Shown: positions 14,095 through 42,428 of the stretch, one piece after another
Layout of the letters: each line of letters begins with the position of its first letter
Numbering within the stretch: position 1 is the first letter of the stretch
Translations under genes and position numbers: made by a program
Notes under the pieces: generated by a model
What the model saw: only the letters and a program-made list of their open reading frames with translations
The model's database searches: none
What the model was told of the DNA's origin: nothing
Virus record (IMG/VR): IMGVR_UViG_3300032770_000001
Span: 248,001 to 312,000 of that record
Length of the DNA stretch: 64,000 nt
Direction: 5' to 3' (one strand)

Positions 14095-15537
14095 GAGTCG
14101 TACAGCTTGGCGGTCTCACAGTCGTCGGCATGAGCGAAGAGCAAGAAGTTTTCATGCGCAAGCGTGAAGCTTTCGTCGAACGCTGGATGAAGGAACACGG
14201 TCTGACAAAAGAGACCGCGACCATCAAACAGATTCTTGAAATGCGCCAAGAAGAAGGGTGGAAGAATCCCCAATGAAAACCCTGAGCGTCAACCGCTTCA
14301 TCTGTCAACGTACCGGGCGTATCTTCGATACCGAAGCGGCCTGCCGCGTGTCTGAAAACAAATTCCCCGCCAAGAAAATCAAACAGTTGTTCGACCGCAT
14401 CATGCGAGGCAAGTATTGGGTGCCGAAAGTCGGCGATCTTGTCTATGTGCCGACGATGATGTCCATCGATCATGGCGAGGATGACGTGCAGGGTGGACGT
14501 GCAATGGTCACCCGCGTTTACAAAAACATGAGCGGCGGCGACAAGGACTGCATCTTTATCGAAATCGCGCAGCATGATCGCGGCGGCAATTGGACGCAGT
14601 TCCTTTTCCCGGAACAGAAGCAACTGATGCATCGCTTCAAGGACATGGTCGCCCGTCCCGATCCTGATTACGGTCCGAGCGATCCCAACGGAGGATGGAG
14701 CTAATGGAAACTCGTGAACAACATTTGAACTGGTGCAAAGAACGTGCGCTGGCGATTCTGAACACTGGTGATATCGCCGGAGCCTATGCTTCAATGGCAT
14801 CCGATCTCCGCAAACACCCGGAAACCGAGGATCACATCGCTATCGGTCTAGGGATGTCGCTTTTGTTCGGTGGACACCTGAACACAACCAACGAGATGCG
14901 CAAATTCATCGAAGGCTTCAACTGAGCCTGCACTGGCAGAAAGACCTGCCGCACAAGTTCGTCTGGCGATGGGCGACTTGGATGCGCCGGGAATACAAAC
15001 GACAGCAGAGAATGCGAAATGAGTCGAGGCAGCAAGGTTCATCCGAAGGGCGAATTCGATATCCGCTATCCGGCTGTCGAGAAATTTGAGCAGTTCTGCG
15101 CTAACCTGCGGTCGCACATGAGGGCGCACGATAAGGGCGATCTCAAGAATGCACAGATCATTTATCGCCGAGCCGTGGGATACGCTTACGAGCGAACCAA
15201 GTCGGCGGTAGAGGCAATGAACCCGAACGATTTTACAGACGTGATGACTCCGGCGTGGAGGCAGTTCCGATTTAATCACGGCGAGTTATCCCGGCTGATT
15301 AGCAAGTACAGATTCATCAAGCAAGAGGACATCAAGATATGAGCCATCTCGCCGATCCCGAAACACAGCCACTCTGGAACAAGGTCATCGACATGTGCGG
15401 CGGTGACTATGACCAAGCCGTGACGTTCATTTGCCGCCTGCGGGAGTTGGTATGTGTTGTCGATCCGTCACGTGGCGAAGATGTCACCAATGCGATTCGC
15501 CGTGCGCAGTACGAAGAGGCTCTTGAGGAGGCTCTGT

Positions 15538-17652
15538 TTGACTAACTCAATCGACAACCCGGCAGTCATTGCGCGTATTCGGCAGCTTAATACCGAACTG
15601 GAACTGGCACGCGAGGCTTATTACAAGTCGGCTACGCCGATCATGTCGGACGCTGAATACGACAAGAAGGAAAAGAACCTTCGCGATATCGTGAAATCAA
15701 GCCCGTGGCTGGCCGAATTTGCTCCGGTATTGACTACGGTCGGTAACGATCTGATGCCTGCCGCAGGGCGTATTCGTCATAGCCGCCCCATGCTCTCCAT
15801 CGAGAACAAATACGAGAAGTCCGAGATCGATGATTTCCAGAAGAACGTATTGCATGGCGAAGCAATGCTTCTGGAGCCGAAACGTGACGGCATTTCCTGC
15901 GAACTTCGCTACCGCGAGGGCAAGCTGCAACTGGCATTGACACGTGGTTCCGGCTCCGAGGGCGAGGATATCACGGCTCAGATTCGTGTGCTGAGAGACA
16001 TCCCGAAAGAGATCAAGTATAGTGACGCATTCCCGCATAGCCTTGATGTGCGCGGTGAACTGGTCATGCGCAAGTCCGAACTGGAGCGCCTGAACAAGAT
16101 CGCCCGTGAGAAGGGCGGCAAGGAATATCAGTCCACTCGCAATTTGGTTGCTGGCACCGTCAAGTTGAAGGACATGAACGAAGTTGCCAAGCGTGAGATT
16201 CTGTTTATCCCGTGGGAGATGACCGGGGATGGGCAACTGTCGGATAGTGGCTATGTCCGTATGACCATGTTGGCAAGTGCAGGCTTCGCCAAGTACGAGG
16301 GCTATCTGGTCGATCCAGCCGACAGCACCGACGTTATTAAGGTGCTCGATCACATCCTGAAAGAGAACGAGCAATCACAGATCGTGGCTGATGGCGTAGT
16401 CGCCAAAGCTGACAGCATGAAGCTGCGCAAGGAACTCGGCGGCGGCACCAAGTTCGCTAACTATCAAGTTTGTTACAAACCGCAGACCGACTTCGCTACG
16501 ACCTACTTGCGCAAGATCGTGTGGCAGACCGGGCGCTCCGGCAAACTGACCCCGGTCGGCGAGTGCGACCCGGTTCCTTTGGCGGGGGCGGTGGTGACCC
16601 GTGCAACCCTCAATAATCTCAGTTTTATTGAGGAAATGGGACTCAAATTGAACGCCAAAGTGAAGATGCTTCGCTCTGGCGGCGTAATCCCGGAGATCGA
16701 CGGAGTCATCGAAGAGGGCGACACCGCAATTAAAGCACCCGGACATTGTCCGGAGTGCGGCAGCATTATCGTTGCCGAGACAGATGAGCGCAGCGGCATC
16801 CTGACGCACTGGTGTCAGAACGTCGAGTGCCCCGGTCGCGTCTCCGATCTGTTCTATTTCATCGGCGGACGAGGCGTGCTGGAGATTGACGGACTCGGCC
16901 CGGAAATGGCTTTGAAGATCGTCAAGGATGGCTACGCCCGAAATATCGGCGAACTTTTCGAATTCCAGACTGAGGCAATGGAAGGCATCAAGACACACGG
17001 CGAAGAGAACTTCGACCGCCGTATGGCGAAACGCGGCTTCTCTGTCGTGTTCCGTAAGATGGTGCAGTCGATGGAACTCGCCAAAAAGAAAGATTGGGAT
17101 CGCTGGATTATGGCTCTCGGTATCCCCATGATCGGTGGGTCGCTTTCCAAGGTTCTGGCGACGAAGTTGGAATTGATGCCGGAGTCGATGAAGTACCTGA
17201 CCGCCCGATTGCTCGATGTTGAGGGCATGGAGATCGAAGGCATCGGTTTCCACAAAAAGCAGATGATTCTGGATTGGGCGAAGGATAGTCAGAATCGCAA
17301 GATTTGCGAGGCTCTGTATAACGCCGGGGTTGCTCCCAAGGCTCCTGAGAAAGTACAGGTGGTTGCCGGGGAGCCGCTTAAGAACGTGGTGTTCGTCATC
17401 ACTGGCGAGTTCAGTGAGGATCGTGAGAAAATCACGGCAAAACTGGTAAAACTTGGTGCTACATCAAAGTCTGGTGTATCATCGAAGGTGAACCTGTTGA
17501 TCGTCGGGGAAGCCCCCGGCAAGACCAAGACAACCAAGGCGAAAGAACTTGGGATTCAACAGGTCGGCAAGGACTGGCTGGTCAACGTGCTTCGCGAGAA
17601 CGGCATGGAATTGTCCGGCTCCGGGCTCGATTTTGAAATGGACGAGGCGTAA
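15538..17652 (+). CDS. ligA: NAD-dependent DNA ligase
   Basis: MSDAEYD, RPMLSI, EPKRDG (KxDG), TRG, VRGE, GRSGKLTPV, zinc finger, C-terminal BRCT; TTG start after GAGGAG. Confidence 0.95.
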   Translation: MTNSIDNPAVIARIRQLNTELELAREAYYKSATPIMSDAEYDKKEKNLRDIVKSSPWLAEFAPVLTTVGNDLMPAAGRIRHSRPMLSIENKYEKSEIDDFQKNVLHGEAMLLEPKRDGISCELRYREGKLQLALTRGSGSEGEDITAQIRVLRDIPKEIKYSDAFPHSLDVRGELVMRKSELERLNKIAREKGGKEYQSTRNLVAGTVKLKDMNEVAKREILFIPWEMTGDGQLSDSGYVRMTMLASAGFAKYEGYLVDPADSTDVIKVLDHILKENEQSQIVADGVVAKADSMKLRKELGGGTKFANYQVCYKPQTDFATTYLRKIVWQTGRSGKLTPVGECDPVPLAGAVVTRATLNNLSFIEEMGLKLNAKVKMLRSGGVIPEIDGVIEEGDTAIKAPGHCPECGSIIVAETDERSGILTHWCQNVECPGRVSDLFYFIGGRGVLEIDGLGPEMALKIVKDGYARNIGELFEFQTEAMEGIKTHGEENFDRRMAKRGFSVVFRKMVQSMELAKKKDWDRWIMALGIPMIGGSLSKVLATKLELMPESMKYLTARLLDVEGMEIEGIGFHKKQMILDWAKDSQNRKICEALYNAGVAPKAPEKVQVVAGEPLKNVVFVITGEFSEDREKITAKLVKLGATSKSGVSSKVNLLIVGEAPGKTKTTKAKELGIQQVGKDWLVNVLRENGMELSGSGLDFEMDEA

Positions 17653-21529: not shown

Positions 21530-22364
21530 TGGCAAATTACATCCATGTAGAAGCGAAGGGCGGGGGCACCGAGGACATCGATTTCGGTTTCACGACCGAA
21601 GAAGACCCCATCGATGTAATCAAGAAGTGGCGTGCCGAAGGTGGGATTGACACCGGAACCTCTCAATCAGGCAGGACACTCCAGACGGGGTCATTCATCC
21701 CGTGGCATAGGATTCGCGATATAAAGTTTGAGCGAAATTGGAAGAACACGTATCAGGGGGACGGCTTCTCATGAGGATGATTACTGGCTACATTGTTGCC
21801 GATCCGAGCAAGCTCCCACCGGGCACCTGTCAACGCTGCGGTGGTTGGTCACCGGGCTACGGGCCGTGCCATGATGGTGTCACCGGGATCGAGATGCATC
21901 ACGCAGGCGGCGAAGTCCGTTGCGCGATCTGCGGTCGTTGCGGCGGCACCGGGAAAGAGCTATACTGGAAACGCATTCCACAATGGCGTTGGTACAAACC
22001 ACAGACATGGGGCAAAGGTTGGTACGTGGACAACACAGGCACCGTCCAGAATCCACGATTCGGGCAGGAGTATTATCCATGAAAGAACGCACCTGTTTTT
22101 GTGAACTCATCAACAGCGGTATGGTGGATGGCAGGAATCCTCCCCTAGTATGTCCGGAGCATCCAAGAAATTTCAGCATTCCGCCTGAGGGATACGAGCC
22201 GCCCAAACTCCACAAGTGGCAGTTCTGGTTTAGCAAGCACGCACTGTGTTGGGGCGACCGGAAAAGCGGAACTACCTACCACGAGATCGGATACCTGTGG
22301 GTCTTCGTGATCGTGTGGGGCATCGGACATTTCGTCGTCCTGCCGCTCCTCCCAAAATAAATTG

Positions 22365-22396
22365 TTGACAGTTTTCCGACTTTCTGGTATTAGTAT
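22365..22396 (+). promoter_or_regulatory. sigma70-like promoter of tRNA array 1
   Basis: TTGACA 22365-22370, then TGGTATTAGTAT; nearly the same element precedes array 2. Confidence 0.75.
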
Positions 22397-22418
22397 AGTA
22401 GTAGGAACACAAACTCGA

Positions 22419-22496
22419 ATGGTTCGCATACACGCATTATCGTCGTCCTCAAGTAGCTCCCGTAGCGGGAGCGGCGGCGTTGGTGTGTGCTTGTAA
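22419..22496 (+). CDS. attenuator leader peptide 1 (MVRIHALSSSSSSSRSGSGGVGVCL)
   Basis: 25-codon ORF with ATA, TTA and the run TCG TCG TCC TCA AGT AGC TCC; overlaps alternative hairpins; matches downstream tRNAs. Confidence 0.85.
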   Translation: MVRIHALSSSSSSSRSGSGGVGVCL

Positions 22497-22532
22497 ACAC
22501 TTGAAAACAAGCAAGTAAGAAACACCGATGAA

Positions 22533-22566
22533 GCCGCCTAGAAACTTGGGCGGCATTTGTGTTTTT
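22533..22566 (+). terminator. attenuator terminator of tRNA array 1
   Basis: GCCGCCTAG-AAAC-TTGGGCGGC followed by ATTTGTGTTTTT. Confidence 0.8.
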
Positions 22567-22602
22567 AGGGTAGTTTAATGGTATAGCTGGTATTGATATA
22601 CC

Positions 22603-22965
22603 ATGGAGTGCCAATATCACAGATGCGGTAAGGAACTCATCGGCAGGCAGACGAAGTTCTGCTCTCCGAACTGTAAGAACAAAAACAATGTTCACCTTAG
22701 CCGTAGGCGGATGAAGCGTCGAGCAGTCGATTATCTCGGCGGAAAGTGTGTTGGGTGTGGGTATTCCAGATGTCTGGATGCCTTGGAATTCCACCACAAC
22801 TGTGATGAAAAAGAGACTGAAGTTTCAAAGATGATCGCCAATAACAGACCTTGGGAGGTCATCTTACAAGAATTGAAAAAGTGTGAGCTTAGGTGCGCCA
22901 ATTGCCACGCTGAGTATCATACATTAGGTGAGTTGGGAGAGAGGCTTATCCCGCTCGGTTGCTAA
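22603..22965 (+). CDS. HNH endonuclease (free-standing homing type)
   Basis: GGKCVGCGYSRCLDALEFHH...ELKKCELRCANCHAEYH; stop lies in the tRNA-Ser(GCT) anticodon loop. Confidence 0.85.
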   Translation: MECQYHRCGKELIGRQTKFCSPNCKNKNNVHLSRRRMKRRAVDYLGGKCVGCGYSRCLDALEFHHNCDEKETEVSKMIANNRPWEVILQELKKCELRCANCHAEYHTLGELGERLIPLGC

Positions 22966-23018
22966 CCGAGAGTCCCCCGCGAGGGGGACCGCAAGTTCGA
23001 ATCTTGCACTCACCGCCA
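22927..23018 (+). tRNA. tRNA-Ser(GCT)
   Basis: GGTGAGT/ACTCACC-G-CCA; CTCGG-TTGCTAA-CCGAG; long V arm. Confidence 0.95.
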
Positions 23019-23031
23019 AGTTTTGAAGTTT

Positions 23032-23121
23032 GGTGAGTTGGGAGAGTGGTTTAATCCGCCACGTTGGAAGCGTGGAGCACCCGTAAGGGTGCCGCAAGTT
23101 CGAATCTTGCACTCACCGCCA
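23032..23121 (+). tRNA. tRNA-Ser(GGA)
   Basis: CCACG-TTGGAAG-CGTGG; long V arm; GCCA end. Confidence 0.95.
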
Positions 23122-23135
23122 AATTTTTGAAGTAC

Positions 23136-23232
23136 GGTGGGGTTGGTACATGTGGCTTAGGTCCGCTCGTCTTGAAAACGAGTATACTTCAGAGATGGAG
23201 TATTGCCAGTTCAACTCTGGCTCCCACCGCCA
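23136..23232 (+). tRNA. tRNA-Ser(TGA)
   Basis: CTCGT-CTTGAAA-ACGAG; long V arm; atypical D arm. Confidence 0.9.
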
Positions 23233-23237
23233 AGTTT

Positions 23238-23333
23238 GGAGAGGTTGGTACATGTGGCAAGTCCGCTCGCCTCGAAAGCGAGTCACGGGGTTAATCACCC
23301 CGTGTGCAGGTTCGACTCCTGTCCTCTCCGCCA
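23238..23333 (+). tRNA. tRNA-Ser(CGA)
   Basis: CTCGC-CTCGAAA-GCGAG; long V arm; GCCA end. Confidence 0.92.
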
Positions 23334-23341
23334 TTTTACGT

Positions 23342-23419
23342 GCGCACGTGAAGGGAATTGGCATACCTTTCCCACTTAAAACGGGAAGCTTGTGGGTTCA
23401 ACTCCCACCGTGCGCACCA
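23342..23419 (+). tRNA. tRNA-Leu(TAA), short variable loop
   Basis: GCGCACG/CGTGCGC-A-CCA; loop CTTAAAA. Confidence 0.85.
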
Positions 23420-23424
23420 AGTTT

Positions 23425-23519
23425 GGGGGAGAGCACTGGCTGTGCGGCTGGGCCTTATAAACCCGGAGTAGCTCCTGATTAGAGCAGACGGTGGGGTTCG
23501 AATCCCTACTCCCCTACCA
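23425..23519 (+). tRNA. atypical tRNA-Ile(TAT)
   Basis: GGGGGAG/CTCCCCT-A-CCA; loop CTTATAA; 5-nt D loop; long V arm. Confidence 0.75.
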
Positions 23520-23549
23520 ATTTCTTCCTTCCTGTAGTATCATTCCAGC

Positions 23550-24056
23550 ATGGAACTCACCGACCGCGAATACTATCGAGCGCACATGGCGGAATATGCC
23601 AAAGACACGATGGTTCTGTCTTTCACGAAAACCAATCATCCCAGTTATCAGGCGATTCTTTCAATGGGCTCCCTTGCAGTTCCATTCTTACTTGAAGACG
23701 TGCAGTCACAGCACCCAGATGGATCATGGACGCCGGGAGAGCGGCAGTTCTCTTACTGGGGCGCAACTTCGTTGCTCTGGCAAATCACGGCAAAGTCAAT
23801 TAACACACCGCCTGCTCCAATTCTGCCGGAGAAGGATCGTGGTCGGCTGGCTCCGATTCGCAAGTTGTGGGTGGACTGGGGGATCGCGAATGGCTACCTA
23901 ACGCCGAATGACCCCAAGATTCCTCTTCGTTTCAATCAGGTTCACCGCTTTGTGCCGAAGCGGTTCTTCGGGCTCCGCAATTACATCTGGCGTCTGACCA
24001 CGCTGCCGAACAAGCATCGCATGAAACATTCATGGGACTACTGGAGAGCGATTTAA
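23550..24056 (+). CDS. hypothetical protein
   Basis: 168-aa ORF directly after a TG-TAGTAT element. Confidence 0.65.
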   Translation: MELTDREYYRAHMAEYAKDTMVLSFTKTNHPSYQAILSMGSLAVPFLLEDVQSQHPDGSWTPGERQFSYWGATSLLWQITAKSINTPPAPILPEKDRGRLAPIRKLWVDWGIANGYLTPNDPKIPLRFNQVHRFVPKRFFGLRNYIWRLTTLPNKHRMKHSWDYWRAI

Positions 24057-25186
24057 TGGGTAACTTCAAGCCGTTCAAGATTCTTTTCTCCGGGATGGGT
24101 ATCATTTTTCTTCTCATCCTTGGCTACCTCTTCCTGCACTGGGTCGGCGTACACGTCAGCTTCGTTGAGAGGCCGATTTCCGACAGCGACTTCAAGCAGT
24201 GGGTAATAGTCCTCCTCGTCGTCATCGCCTGCAAGAGCGGCGGCGATTGTAACTGCAACTGCAAGAAGGGCTGATATGGCGCTCCATCTATACGAGACCA
24301 ACGAGGGTTACATCTGCGACCACGGCAAGCCGGGATCGATGATGCTGGCTTCGGTCCCATTCATTGCTCACTGCGAAGAGTGCATCCGCAAGGCATTTGC
24401 TGAAGCTTTAGAGCGGACGTTGCGGGAAAACGGCTTCTCAACCCCTTAACTATAGGGGGTACTTTTCATGATCGCTGCTCTTTTGCTCTACTTTATCTCG
24501 CTGGCAATGCTCGGATTCACCGTGGGCTGTGGTGTTTATGCCTACAAAAAGTCCACCACCTACAACCAGTTCATGAATGAACATCCGATTTTGGGTTGGA
24601 CGGCTACGATCACGACAGCCGGACTGATTCTGTATGGAGAATTCCTGTTCCTTCTCTTGACGGTCGCCACGATCCTCGTTATGCTTGGACTAACCAATCT
24701 CGCAGTTCAGTAATAGGAGATCGAATGCCAGCAGCAACGAAGGATCACCGTAGCAAGAAGAACGCTCAGTCCCACGAGTCGCACCTTCGTCGGAAGCGTG
24801 AACTCAATGCCGCCAATACTACGGCGATTCAGTTCCAGCGCATCTATCGCATCAACTGTCTCAAGCAGCGCAAGGCAGAAGGTCGCCTGACCGAGAAGAA
24901 CGAAAAAGAGATCGTCTCCCTCGGCATCACTACGGAAGTGCATCTCAAGAATGGCATCTGAACTGGCAGTAATGCGGTTGGATCGCCTCCTCGATACTGA
25001 GGAGGGACGGCGGCTCCTGACTGATGCCGTGATGGAAATCATGCGGACACGCGCAACAGTCGATGTCGGGGCGGTTGCGGCGGATTTAGCTCCGATGCTG
25101 GATGCGCAGAAACTATCCTTCCTCGTGGAAGTGTTGCAGGAAGCCGCTCAACGTTCCGGAATCGCCATTACCCTCCCGAATCAAGC

Positions 25187-35746: not shown

Positions 35747-35825
35747 AGGGGCGTAAGACTATCTGGCGTCGTCGGCTGGTCTCCAAAACCATGCAGTGGG
35801 GGTTCAAATCCCCCCGCCCCTGCCA
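35747..35825 (+). tRNA. tRNA-Trp(CCA)
   Basis: AGGGGCG/CGCCCCT-G-CCA; loop CTCCAAA. Confidence 0.9.
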
Positions 35826-42344: not shown

Positions 42345-42428
42345 GGGGGCGTAGTCGGGGGGCTCTTCTAAAGCCTTAGCCGTAAACCGGAACTGCGAAT
42401 GCGAGTTCGAATCTCGCCGCCCCTTCCA
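42345..42428 (+). tRNA. D-armless tRNA-Arg(TCT)-like RNA
   Basis: GGGGGCG/CGCCCCT-T-CCA; GGGCT-CTTCTAA-AGCCT; canonical T arm; only 7-8 nt in place of the D arm. Confidence 0.7.

Follow-up and report, generated by a model that had tools for sequence, protein, structure and literature searches.

A conserved tRNA(UAU) family with a compacted core and a long variable arm, probably reading AUA independently of TilS, in phages and bacterial tRNA arrays

AUA is the only sense codon that nearly all bacteria read solely after an essential enzyme, TilS, has changed C34 of a Met-like tRNA. Class I tRNAIle(UAU) occurs in bacteria that read AUA without or beside lysidine (PMC9976931 and its refs 44-45). 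The allo-tRNAs resemble tRNASec, divide acceptor and T stem 8/4 or 9/3 and have G73 or U73 in most cases (PMC5389517). Here we describe a tRNA(UAU) gene at positions 23425-23519 of a 64,000-nucleotide (nt) stretch of viral DNA (hereafter the window), which comprises bases 248001-312000 of a 455,708-bp IMG/VR virus (IMGVR_UViG_3300032770_000001, complete by CheckV). The source is a huge phage, and the RNA is a real structured RNA, a member of a widespread and conserved tRNA(UAU) family.

The gene corresponds to a cloverleaf composed of the following elements, with the type of evidence for each given in brackets:

23425-23431, + strand: 5' strand of the acceptor, GGGGGAG, pairing with 23509-23515 (CUCCCCU), including G1.U72 (sequence, fold, covariation)
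23432, + strand: single connector nucleotide, A8 (sequence; A in 89/89 family members)
23433-23445, + strand: D arm, with stem GCAC/GUGC and a 5-nt loop, UGGCU, that includes the G18G19-equivalent GG (sequence, fold)
23446-23447, + strand: GG linker from D stem to anticodon stem (sequence)
23448-23466, + strand: anticodon arm, with stem CUGGG/CCCGG and a sixth position, C.A (23453/23461) (sequence, fold, covariation)
23454-23460, + strand: anticodon loop CUUAUAA, with the anticodon UAU at 23456-23458 (sequence, fold)
23467-23491, + strand: long variable region (24 nt, 23467-23490), consisting of unpaired AGUA, a hairpin, then A and the junction GACGG (sequence, fold)
23471-23474 with 23482-23485, + strand: variable stem GCUC/GAGC, closing a 7-nt loop, CUGAUUA, at 23475-23481 (sequence, fold)
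23492-23508, + strand: T arm, with stem UGGGG/CCCUA and loop UUCGAAU (sequence, fold, covariation)
23509-23519, + strand: 3' strand of the acceptor, CUCCCCU, followed by A73 (23516) and an encoded CCA (23517-23519) (sequence)

This cloverleaf is identical to the minimum-free-energy fold of 23425-23519, and its helices contain no mismatch save at the variable sixth pair of the anticodon stem. An earlier note on the locus had drawn the 1-nt connector, the D arm, the C.A pair and a variable region of about 24 nt with a GCUC/GAGC stem, all of which are present and conserved in the family. Many features of a canonical tRNA are retained (7-bp acceptor, 5-bp T stem, T loop UUCRANY, G18G19, U33, a purine at position 37 and N73-CCA), whereas the two connector nucleotides of canonical tRNAs (8 and 9), a D loop of 7-11 nt and a single nucleotide (26) before the anticodon stem are not found. 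The variable stem-loop exceeds 10 nt, as in class II tRNAs (4-bp stem and 7-nt loop in the window copy), but the anticodon (UAU), the discriminator (A73 rather than G73) and the spacing of the stem depart from that class, in which the variable stem starts within 1-2 nt of the anticodon stem; here 4 unpaired nt precede the hairpin and 5-6 follow it. The folding energy of 23425-23519 was no better than that of shuffles (z = -0.3), so that by itself it proves nothing. No call was made here by ARAGORN at default settings. Rfam model RF00005 gave no match (gathering score 29 bits), a search at E<=10 yielded just a match to transfer-messenger RNA (tmRNA) at 10.6 bits, and the Rfam clan models scored below 10.6 bits.

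Relatives were all found by means of sequence patterns, and the breadth of the family and some of its 'invariant' positions are biased accordingly. An exact 18-mer from the anticodon arm retrieved five other viral contigs, together with a second IMG/VR contig carrying an identical copy of the phage region. A looser pattern fixing just the loop, 'ACGG' and the T loop, with the D arm left free, returned 13 distinct copies, every one of which shares the odd D arm and A73. Fixing the D arm and leaving the anticodon free added dozens more copies, all with UAU, and IMG/VR scans requiring another base at position 34 or 35 on the same scaffold gave no true match. A scan of GTDB with one genome per species produced 46 matches, in metagenome-assembled genomes (MAGs) of Terriglobia/Acidobacteriota and in scattered Alphaproteobacteria, including isolates; cultured carriers are Cereibacter azotoformans KA25, Paracoccus sp. 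R12_2, Roseiterribacter gracilis TMPK1, Nitratireductor sp. XY-223 and Tropicimonas sp. IMCC34043. In total, the family amounts to 89 distinct sequences, drawn from phages of IMG/VR, from tRNA arrays of Terriglobia and from the Alphaproteobacteria.

Invariance at the 'ACGG' junction and in some portions of the D arm was imposed by the patterns and is not evidence. A73 (89/89), the encoded CCA (86/89) and U72 (72/89, mostly as G1.U72) were not imposed by any pattern. All members have an anticodon loop of the form Y-U-UAU-A-N, with U33-UAU-A37 invariant and A38 present in 65/89. The D stem is GCAC/GUGC in 85/89 members, with a compensatory variant GCUC/GAGC, and closes a loop of 3-7 nt, mostly UGGU; the linker that follows is GG in 85/89 and AG in 4/89, at positions fixed in most patterns. 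The sixth anticodon-stem pair is U-A, U.G, C-G, G-C or G.U in 49/89 and mismatched in 40/89, and the 'extended stem with C.A' of the earlier note is thus one state of a variable pair. The variable arm measures 19-30 nt across the family and contains a hairpin of 3-6 bp in 88/89 members. Its stem occurs in 37 distinct sequences, with 3-4 unpaired nt before the hairpin and 5-6 after it. The loop of this arm holds GAU, less often GAC, in every member, and in several members a 7-nt loop is one position off the anticodon loop of tRNAIle(GAU) (CUGAUUA in the window, CAGAUAA in a Hoeflea MAG).

A MAFFT alignment of 52 sequences revealed compensatory changes in 7/7 acceptor, 4/5 T-stem and 5/5 anticodon-stem pairs, with acceptor, D and T helices 100% paired, and unguided RNAalifold returned the same cloverleaf helices. 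In a second alignment of 42 relatives, from which the window sequence and its two nearest kin were left out, 99.7% of cells were paired and compensatory changes were seen in 22 of 26 pairs, including all five pairs of the variable stem; the covariation score was 0.73, compared to 0.17 for shuffles and 0.09-0.14 for slid controls. A covariance model built from this second alignment, with the window copy thus held out, recognised that copy over its full length (model positions 1-95) with a score of 87.0 bits (E 9e-19), while the next best match in the window reached 30.7 bits and ordinary window tRNAs stayed at or below 31 bits.

The Rfam tRNA model missed 7/7 other family copies tested while detecting 48 neighbouring tRNAs, and ARAGORN labelled 24 of 50 phage copies 'Ile(tat)'. 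Because the family is missed by Rfam and half of it by ARAGORN, AUA decoding capacity is probably under-annotated in phage and metagenome surveys. A full-text literature search found no description of the family, allo-tRNA(UAU) being compared by description only and a prior description being possible; the family is apparently undescribed.

Phage copies sit within tRNA clusters of 10-30 genes. The largest subfamily belongs to T4-like genomes of 160-175 kb that encode the gp44/62 clamp loader, RegA, Hsp20 and T4 RNase H, and one copy each is carried by the 455,708-bp phage and by a 359,890-bp relative with a guanine-cytosine (GC) content of 41%. Among the cultured phages of INPHARED, neither the window block nor a copy of the major subfamily was found, matches being limited to the T arm or a Leu tRNA. 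Terriglobia copies lie in arrays of 20-37 tRNAs in which Ile(GAU), tRNA(UAU) and a single CAU tRNA occur together. The order Ser GCU-GGA-UGA-CGA beside Leu(UAA) is common to the window (22927-23419) and Terriglobia arrays (L240:6853-7293, L209:6347-6797), an arrangement suggestive of a shared origin of the clusters in phages and the arrays in bacteria.

Alphaproteobacterial copies are solitary and sporadic: 3 of 151 sampled genomes were positive, two of them known carriers (one being the search seed). No conserved neighbour genes were found around these copies, and the genes downstream are island-like. In a Tagaea sp. MAG, the gene directly downstream of the solitary family member encodes a 791-amino-acid protein (445 bits, L228:3266-5638) of AAA_13, a family to which PrrC and RloC, both anticodon nucleases, belong. 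Downstream of other solitary copies are AAA ATPases or an IS240 transposase, as at an island integration site. A search for a protein partner identified no protein gene that consistently co-occurs with the family. The commonest open reading frame (ORF) of the phage loci, present inside the tRNA clusters in 17/50 (e.g. L109:3452-3919, L025:6445-6924), encodes an RNaseH-like PF04308 protein of about 156 amino acids, which may be a tRNA-processing or tRNA-repair factor; it is absent near the window copy.

ARAGORN detected 61 tRNAs and a permuted tmRNA in the 455,708-bp phage, arranged in five clusters roughly sorted by amino acid, and these tRNAs reach nearly every codon box. Two CAU tRNAs are confident, one of them initiator-like (1-72 mismatch, three G-C anticodon-stem pairs) and the other elongator-Met-like, and without tRNA(UAU) the set has no evident AUA reader. 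TilS (PF01171) was not found in this phage nor in five other carrier phage records. A class Ia synthetase (PF00133) or a PF00587 synthetase was likewise not found in the 455,708-bp phage, and charging must therefore be by a host enzyme. The proposal that UAU would bypass TilS fits these absences, as well as tRNA sets that include Ile(GAU) and tRNA(UAU) but no more than one or two CAU tRNAs.

The phage uses ATA about 500 times (3.7 per 1000 codons), and in the 41%-GC relative ATA makes up 16% of Ile codons. This genome-wide use is a better argument for function than the ATA codon of a 'leader 1' invoked in the earlier note, which was not located and not used here. Across 33 ortholog pairs from two huge phages that carry the family, the residues opposite 84 ATA positions include Ile (28), Val (12), Leu (10) and Met (7), and the log-likelihood (lnL) at these positions was -199.5 for Ile, -214.8 for Val, -222.7 for Met and -226.8 for Leu. 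In 931 ORF pairs from 50 carrier phage loci (ATA-ATA cells excluded), ATA aligned with Ile, Val and Leu at frequencies of.39,.22 and.18, respectively, resembling ATT/ATC (.52,.20 and.12) and differing from Leu codons (Leu at.67); these pairs are not independent, so the frequencies are a description and not a test. ATA in carrier phages behaves as Ile, not Leu.

The gene is the final element of a tight block of six tRNAs, with spacers of 4-14 nt and CCA encoded in each, and 5 nt separate the CCA of Leu(UAA) from G1 of tRNA(UAU). The remainder of the block is as follows:

22927-23419, + strand: upstream part of the tRNA operon, with Ser(GCU), Ser(GGA), Ser(UGA), Ser(CGA) and Leu(UAA) (ARAGORN/Rfam scans)

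Both Ile(GAU) tRNAs of the phage have A73 and all four neighbouring Ser tRNAs have G73. Together with the constancy of A73 in the family and the alignment of carrier ATA as Ile over Leu, this bears out the earlier view that A73 fits Ile or Leu but not Ser. The entire tRNAIle identity set (A73, A35, U36, A37 and A38) is present in the window copy. A long arm is missing from most tRNALeu of the same sets and is therefore no mark of Leu there. Comparison of acceptor, D and T regions with the isoacceptors of the same genome gave inconsistent best matches and was uninformative.

Strong purifying selection with compensatory changes, the invariant U33-UAU-A37 and A73, the CCA and the position in a tRNA operon argue that the RNA is functional, as had been suggested before. 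We consider the locus, with moderate confidence, to be a functional non-canonical elongator tRNA: a TilS-independent, Ile-accepting decoder of AUA that would be charged by the isoleucyl-tRNA synthetase (IleRS) of the host. It would be transcribed as the last gene of the six-tRNA operon, RNase P would free its 5' end (the CCA being already encoded) and host IleRS would add isoleucine by way of A73 and the A35-U36-A37-A38 loop context, which seems the most economical reading of these determinants. Position 34 is U and not C, so no lysidine, and hence no TilS, would be needed. Mobile tRNA sets, both phage clusters and bacterial arrays, would in this manner possess a portable AUA decoder working in any cell entered. 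In its main lines the interpretation of the earlier note is supported, with expression and charging being what we infer from sequence.

Several points weigh against this reading. A weak third CAU tRNA candidate (genome 133587-133658) surfaced at a relaxed threshold only; it has an encoded CCA, two acceptor mismatches and an odd T loop and, if real, could be a lysidine-type tRNAIle2, weakening the gap-filling argument. The behaviour of ATA as Ile could come from the host's own tRNAIle2. TilS was present in 5/5 carrier bacteria examined, and tRNA(UAU) is thus an addition there and not a replacement, so that bypass is not obligatory. Recognition by bacterial IleRS depends on G34 or lysidine-34, and where a species uses UAU its enzyme has adapted (PMC9976931 and its refs 44-45); a generic host IleRS may therefore charge tRNA(UAU) poorly. 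In nematodes, leucine is attached to a tRNA that combines a class II body, A73 and UAU (PMC3333845), and six allo-tRNA(UAU) variants, possibly of a different family, showed no activity in E. coli (PMC5389517, section 16).

Long arm and compressed core, the latter with a 5+1-pair anticodon stem, are parts of one dedicated scaffold, found only with UAU, and the arm or the weak sixth pair would serve the AUA task, perhaps by aiding IleRS with U34, repelling other enzymes or limiting AUG misreading. IleRS or a modification enzyme may recognise the variable-arm loop, or this loop may make a tertiary contact; plain mimicry of an anticodon is disfavoured by the GAC variants and by simple geometry. 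The often-mismatched pair under the anticodon loop might tune decoding so that U34 skips AUG. A more speculative proposal, which we put forward tentatively and regard as rather doubtful, is that the arm with its GAU/GAC loop and the weakened base of the anticodon stem constitute a built-in identity and fidelity module, with which an ordinary IleRS could charge a U34 tRNA that would not read AUG.

If such a module exists, it would represent a novel class of identity element in tRNAs and a novel bacterial tRNA architecture, and phages and arrays would carry a full decoding set independent of TilS, i.e. a horizontally mobile solution for AUA. A widespread and strictly conserved architecture exclusive to UAU would be a second natural answer to the AUA problem, present in T4-like and huge phages and in bacterial arrays. 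It would also illustrate anew the extent to which the tRNA core tolerates rebuilding, and offer a concrete case in which to study the treatment of U34 by IleRS and the ribosome at AUA and AUG. A structurally distinct tRNA independent of TilS is of possible interest to genetic-code engineers.

The unusual scaffold and the conserved GAY motif of the variable loop might also suit a tRNA-shaped RNA that does not decode and acts as a decoy or replacement target for an anticodon nuclease or a tRNA-directed defence, or as a regulatory or enzyme-binding RNA via its variable loop. Such a role would agree with the island-like genes, including the one for the AAA_13 protein, that adjoin solitary alphaproteobacterial copies, and a non-translational role was proposed for allo-tRNA(UAU) by Mukai et al. 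(PMC5389517). However, the canonical anticodon-loop signature, T loop, G18G19, A73 and CCA are strictly conserved, the gene is located in otherwise complete tRNA sets that lack precisely an AUA reader, and no protein gene consistently accompanies it. On balance, we consider a non-decoding function unlikely.

Leucyl-tRNA synthetase (LeuRS) disregards the anticodon. A long variable arm together with A73 could belong to a translating tRNA charged with a 'wrong' amino acid, most plausibly Leu given A73 and the class II-like body, and less so Ser or Tyr, whereby AUA would become ambiguous. The nematode nev-tRNAIle(UAU) provides a precedent (PMC3333845), and in the phage the gene adjoins Ser and Leu(UAA) tRNAs and not Ile(GAU). 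We nevertheless judge mischarging to be improbable: ATA was favoured as Ile over Leu by an lnL difference of 27 over 84 sites, with the same outcome over 2000 cells, most Leu tRNAs of these sets are short-armed, and the core (A8 only, D loop of 4-5 nt) is unlike that of tRNALeu, with no affinity to Leu tRNAs seen. No family member has the G73 typical of tRNASer, A35 does not suit tyrosyl-tRNA synthetase, and in Terriglobia arrays the gene is placed apart from the Tyr/Leu/Ser block.

With the C.A mismatch at the sixth position left unpaired, the window copy would have a 9-nt anticodon loop (CCUUAUAAA) and might decode something other than AUA, for example through an anticodon AUA (Tyr codon) or a quadruplet. 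ARAGORN with introns allowed indeed gave 'Tyr(ata)' after removal of a 2-nt 'CC', and relaxed ARAGORN gave Gly(CCC) with a broken acceptor; both calls were ruled out by the family covariation and the variable sixth pair. In the 49/89 relatives with a standard sixth pair the loop is left with exactly 7 nt (YUUAUAN), and since this pair varies while being formed in so many members, the functional loop is of 7 nt and its anticodon UAU, ruling out AUA as the anticodon. A Tyr reader would moreover require a tRNATyr with A34, for which we know of no precedent, and a 9-nt loop is therefore very improbable. Two other folds were rejected. Taking the second hairpin as the true anticodon arm (GAU) and the first as an insert would imply a loop of 3-7 nt, mostly without U33 or a purine at 37 and with GAC as well, as opposed to the invariant canonical anticodon loop of the first hairpin. 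An 8/4 fold is unconserved, as its eighth pair, between A8 and the last base of the T stem, is A.A here and possible in about one-third of relatives. Finally, a decayed tRNA pseudogene or chance cloverleaf, suggested by the silence of default ARAGORN and Rfam and by a folding energy no better than that of shuffles, is effectively refuted by the 87-bit score of the held-out family model and the strong family-wide covariation, alongside helices free of mismatch outside the sixth pair and an identical copy on the second IMG/VR contig.

Around the tRNA block, a terminator-like site was predicted upstream on the + strand (22533-22554), and a scan of 22300-24300 revealed none 3' of 23519. The flanking ORFs (22603-22965 and 23550-24056) are without a Pfam match, and the window also encodes a 732-amino-acid NAD-dependent DNA ligase (15454-17652, + strand) with adenylation, OB, HhH and BRCT domains. 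Within the block, Ser(UGA) (23136-23232) and Ser(CGA) (23238-23333) are 96-97 nt each and score 36 and 41 bits, respectively, with the Rfam tRNA-Sec model (threshold 47), above their scores with the tRNA model. They look like 8/4-type tRNASer of phage tRNA clusters, a type described in PMC5389517. Leu(UAA) (23342-23419) is 78 nt long including CCA, has no long variable arm and contains an A.C mismatch at 31.39. The same short class I-like form is seen in 4 of 6 phage Leu tRNAs (see also genome 129268-130702) and in Terriglobia arrays (L209, L240), and is unusual among bacterial-type tRNALeu.

Elsewhere in the phage genome, a full-length class A bacterial RNase P RNA (Rfam, 167 bits) lies within a tRNA cluster at ~92128-92502, and the permuted, two-piece tmRNA is located at ~30.9-31.3 kb; the 359,890-bp relative carries such a tmRNA too. 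Two tRNAs with CUA (amber) anticodons and one with a four-base anticodon (GCAA) were identified at genome c25852-25929, c25979-26052 and c26227-26302, and a relative (G001) also has two CUA tRNAs plus a UUA candidate. Stop-codon recoding, prompted by the two CUA tRNAs, was rejected for this phage on ORF statistics, which show no sign of TAG reassignment: code 11 covers 89% of the genome, and readthrough of a single stop adds little. Two further tRNA-like genes of the window (42345-42428 and 35747-35825) came to light only when ARAGORN thresholds were relaxed or the family model was applied. In one the anticodon is UUA (ochre), and the acceptor, T arm and CCA are good while the D and anticodon arms are poor; the other is a Trp(CCA) tRNA whose drawing suggests an 8/4 acceptor/T split.

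Compared with known systems, the family shares UAU with U33, A37, A38 and A73 with class I tRNAIle(UAU) (Mycoplasma mobile, Lactobacillus plantarum, Bifidobacterium), as well as the proposed TilS-free reading of AUA, which can coexist with a TilS system. Class I tRNAIle(UAU), however, is an ordinary tRNA of 76 nt, whereas the present family has a single connector, a D loop of 4-5 nt, a sixth stem position and a 19-30-nt arm and, unlike its class I counterpart, travels on phages and tRNA arrays. The nematode nev-tRNAIle(UAU) (PMC3333845) has in common with it a long variable arm and UAU, for a rare codon, but nev-tRNAs are eukaryotic, derived from tRNALeu and charged with Leu, while the present family showed no tRNALeu affinity and its carriers use ATA in the manner of an Ile codon.

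Allo-tRNAs (PMC5389517) share the long variable arm, the long anticodon stem and the small D loop, UAU is their commonest anticodon, and they too occur in Acidobacteria, Proteobacteria and phages; two 8/4-type tRNASer adjoin the window tRNA(UAU). In contrast to the allo-tRNA split, the family is strictly 7/5 and 100% paired, and, as opposed to tRNASec likeness and G73 or U73, there was no tRNA-Sec match at 23425-23519 (neighbours 36-41 bits) and A73 is universal (89/89). From the 'slightly different' allo-tRNA(UAU) of PMC5389517 the family is set apart by description only.

Core compaction of the same kind (1-nt connector, small D loop and six-pair anticodon stem) is found in tRNAPyl and mammalian mitochondrial tRNASer(UCN). 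The window copy has the connector and D loop of tRNAPyl, its sixth pair being C.A where 49/89 relatives have a standard pair. The description of the D region as 'Pyl-like' is fair for this core and is architectural only: tRNAPyl has a 3-nt variable loop and CUA and is without G18G19 or a T-psi-C loop, while the window RNA has these elbow elements, a long arm and UAU. Finally, tRNAIle2(CAU), with lysidine and TilS, serves the same codon AUA by the opposite strategy, in that its C34 remains Met-like until modified by TilS, whereas a tRNA with U34 needs no such enzyme.

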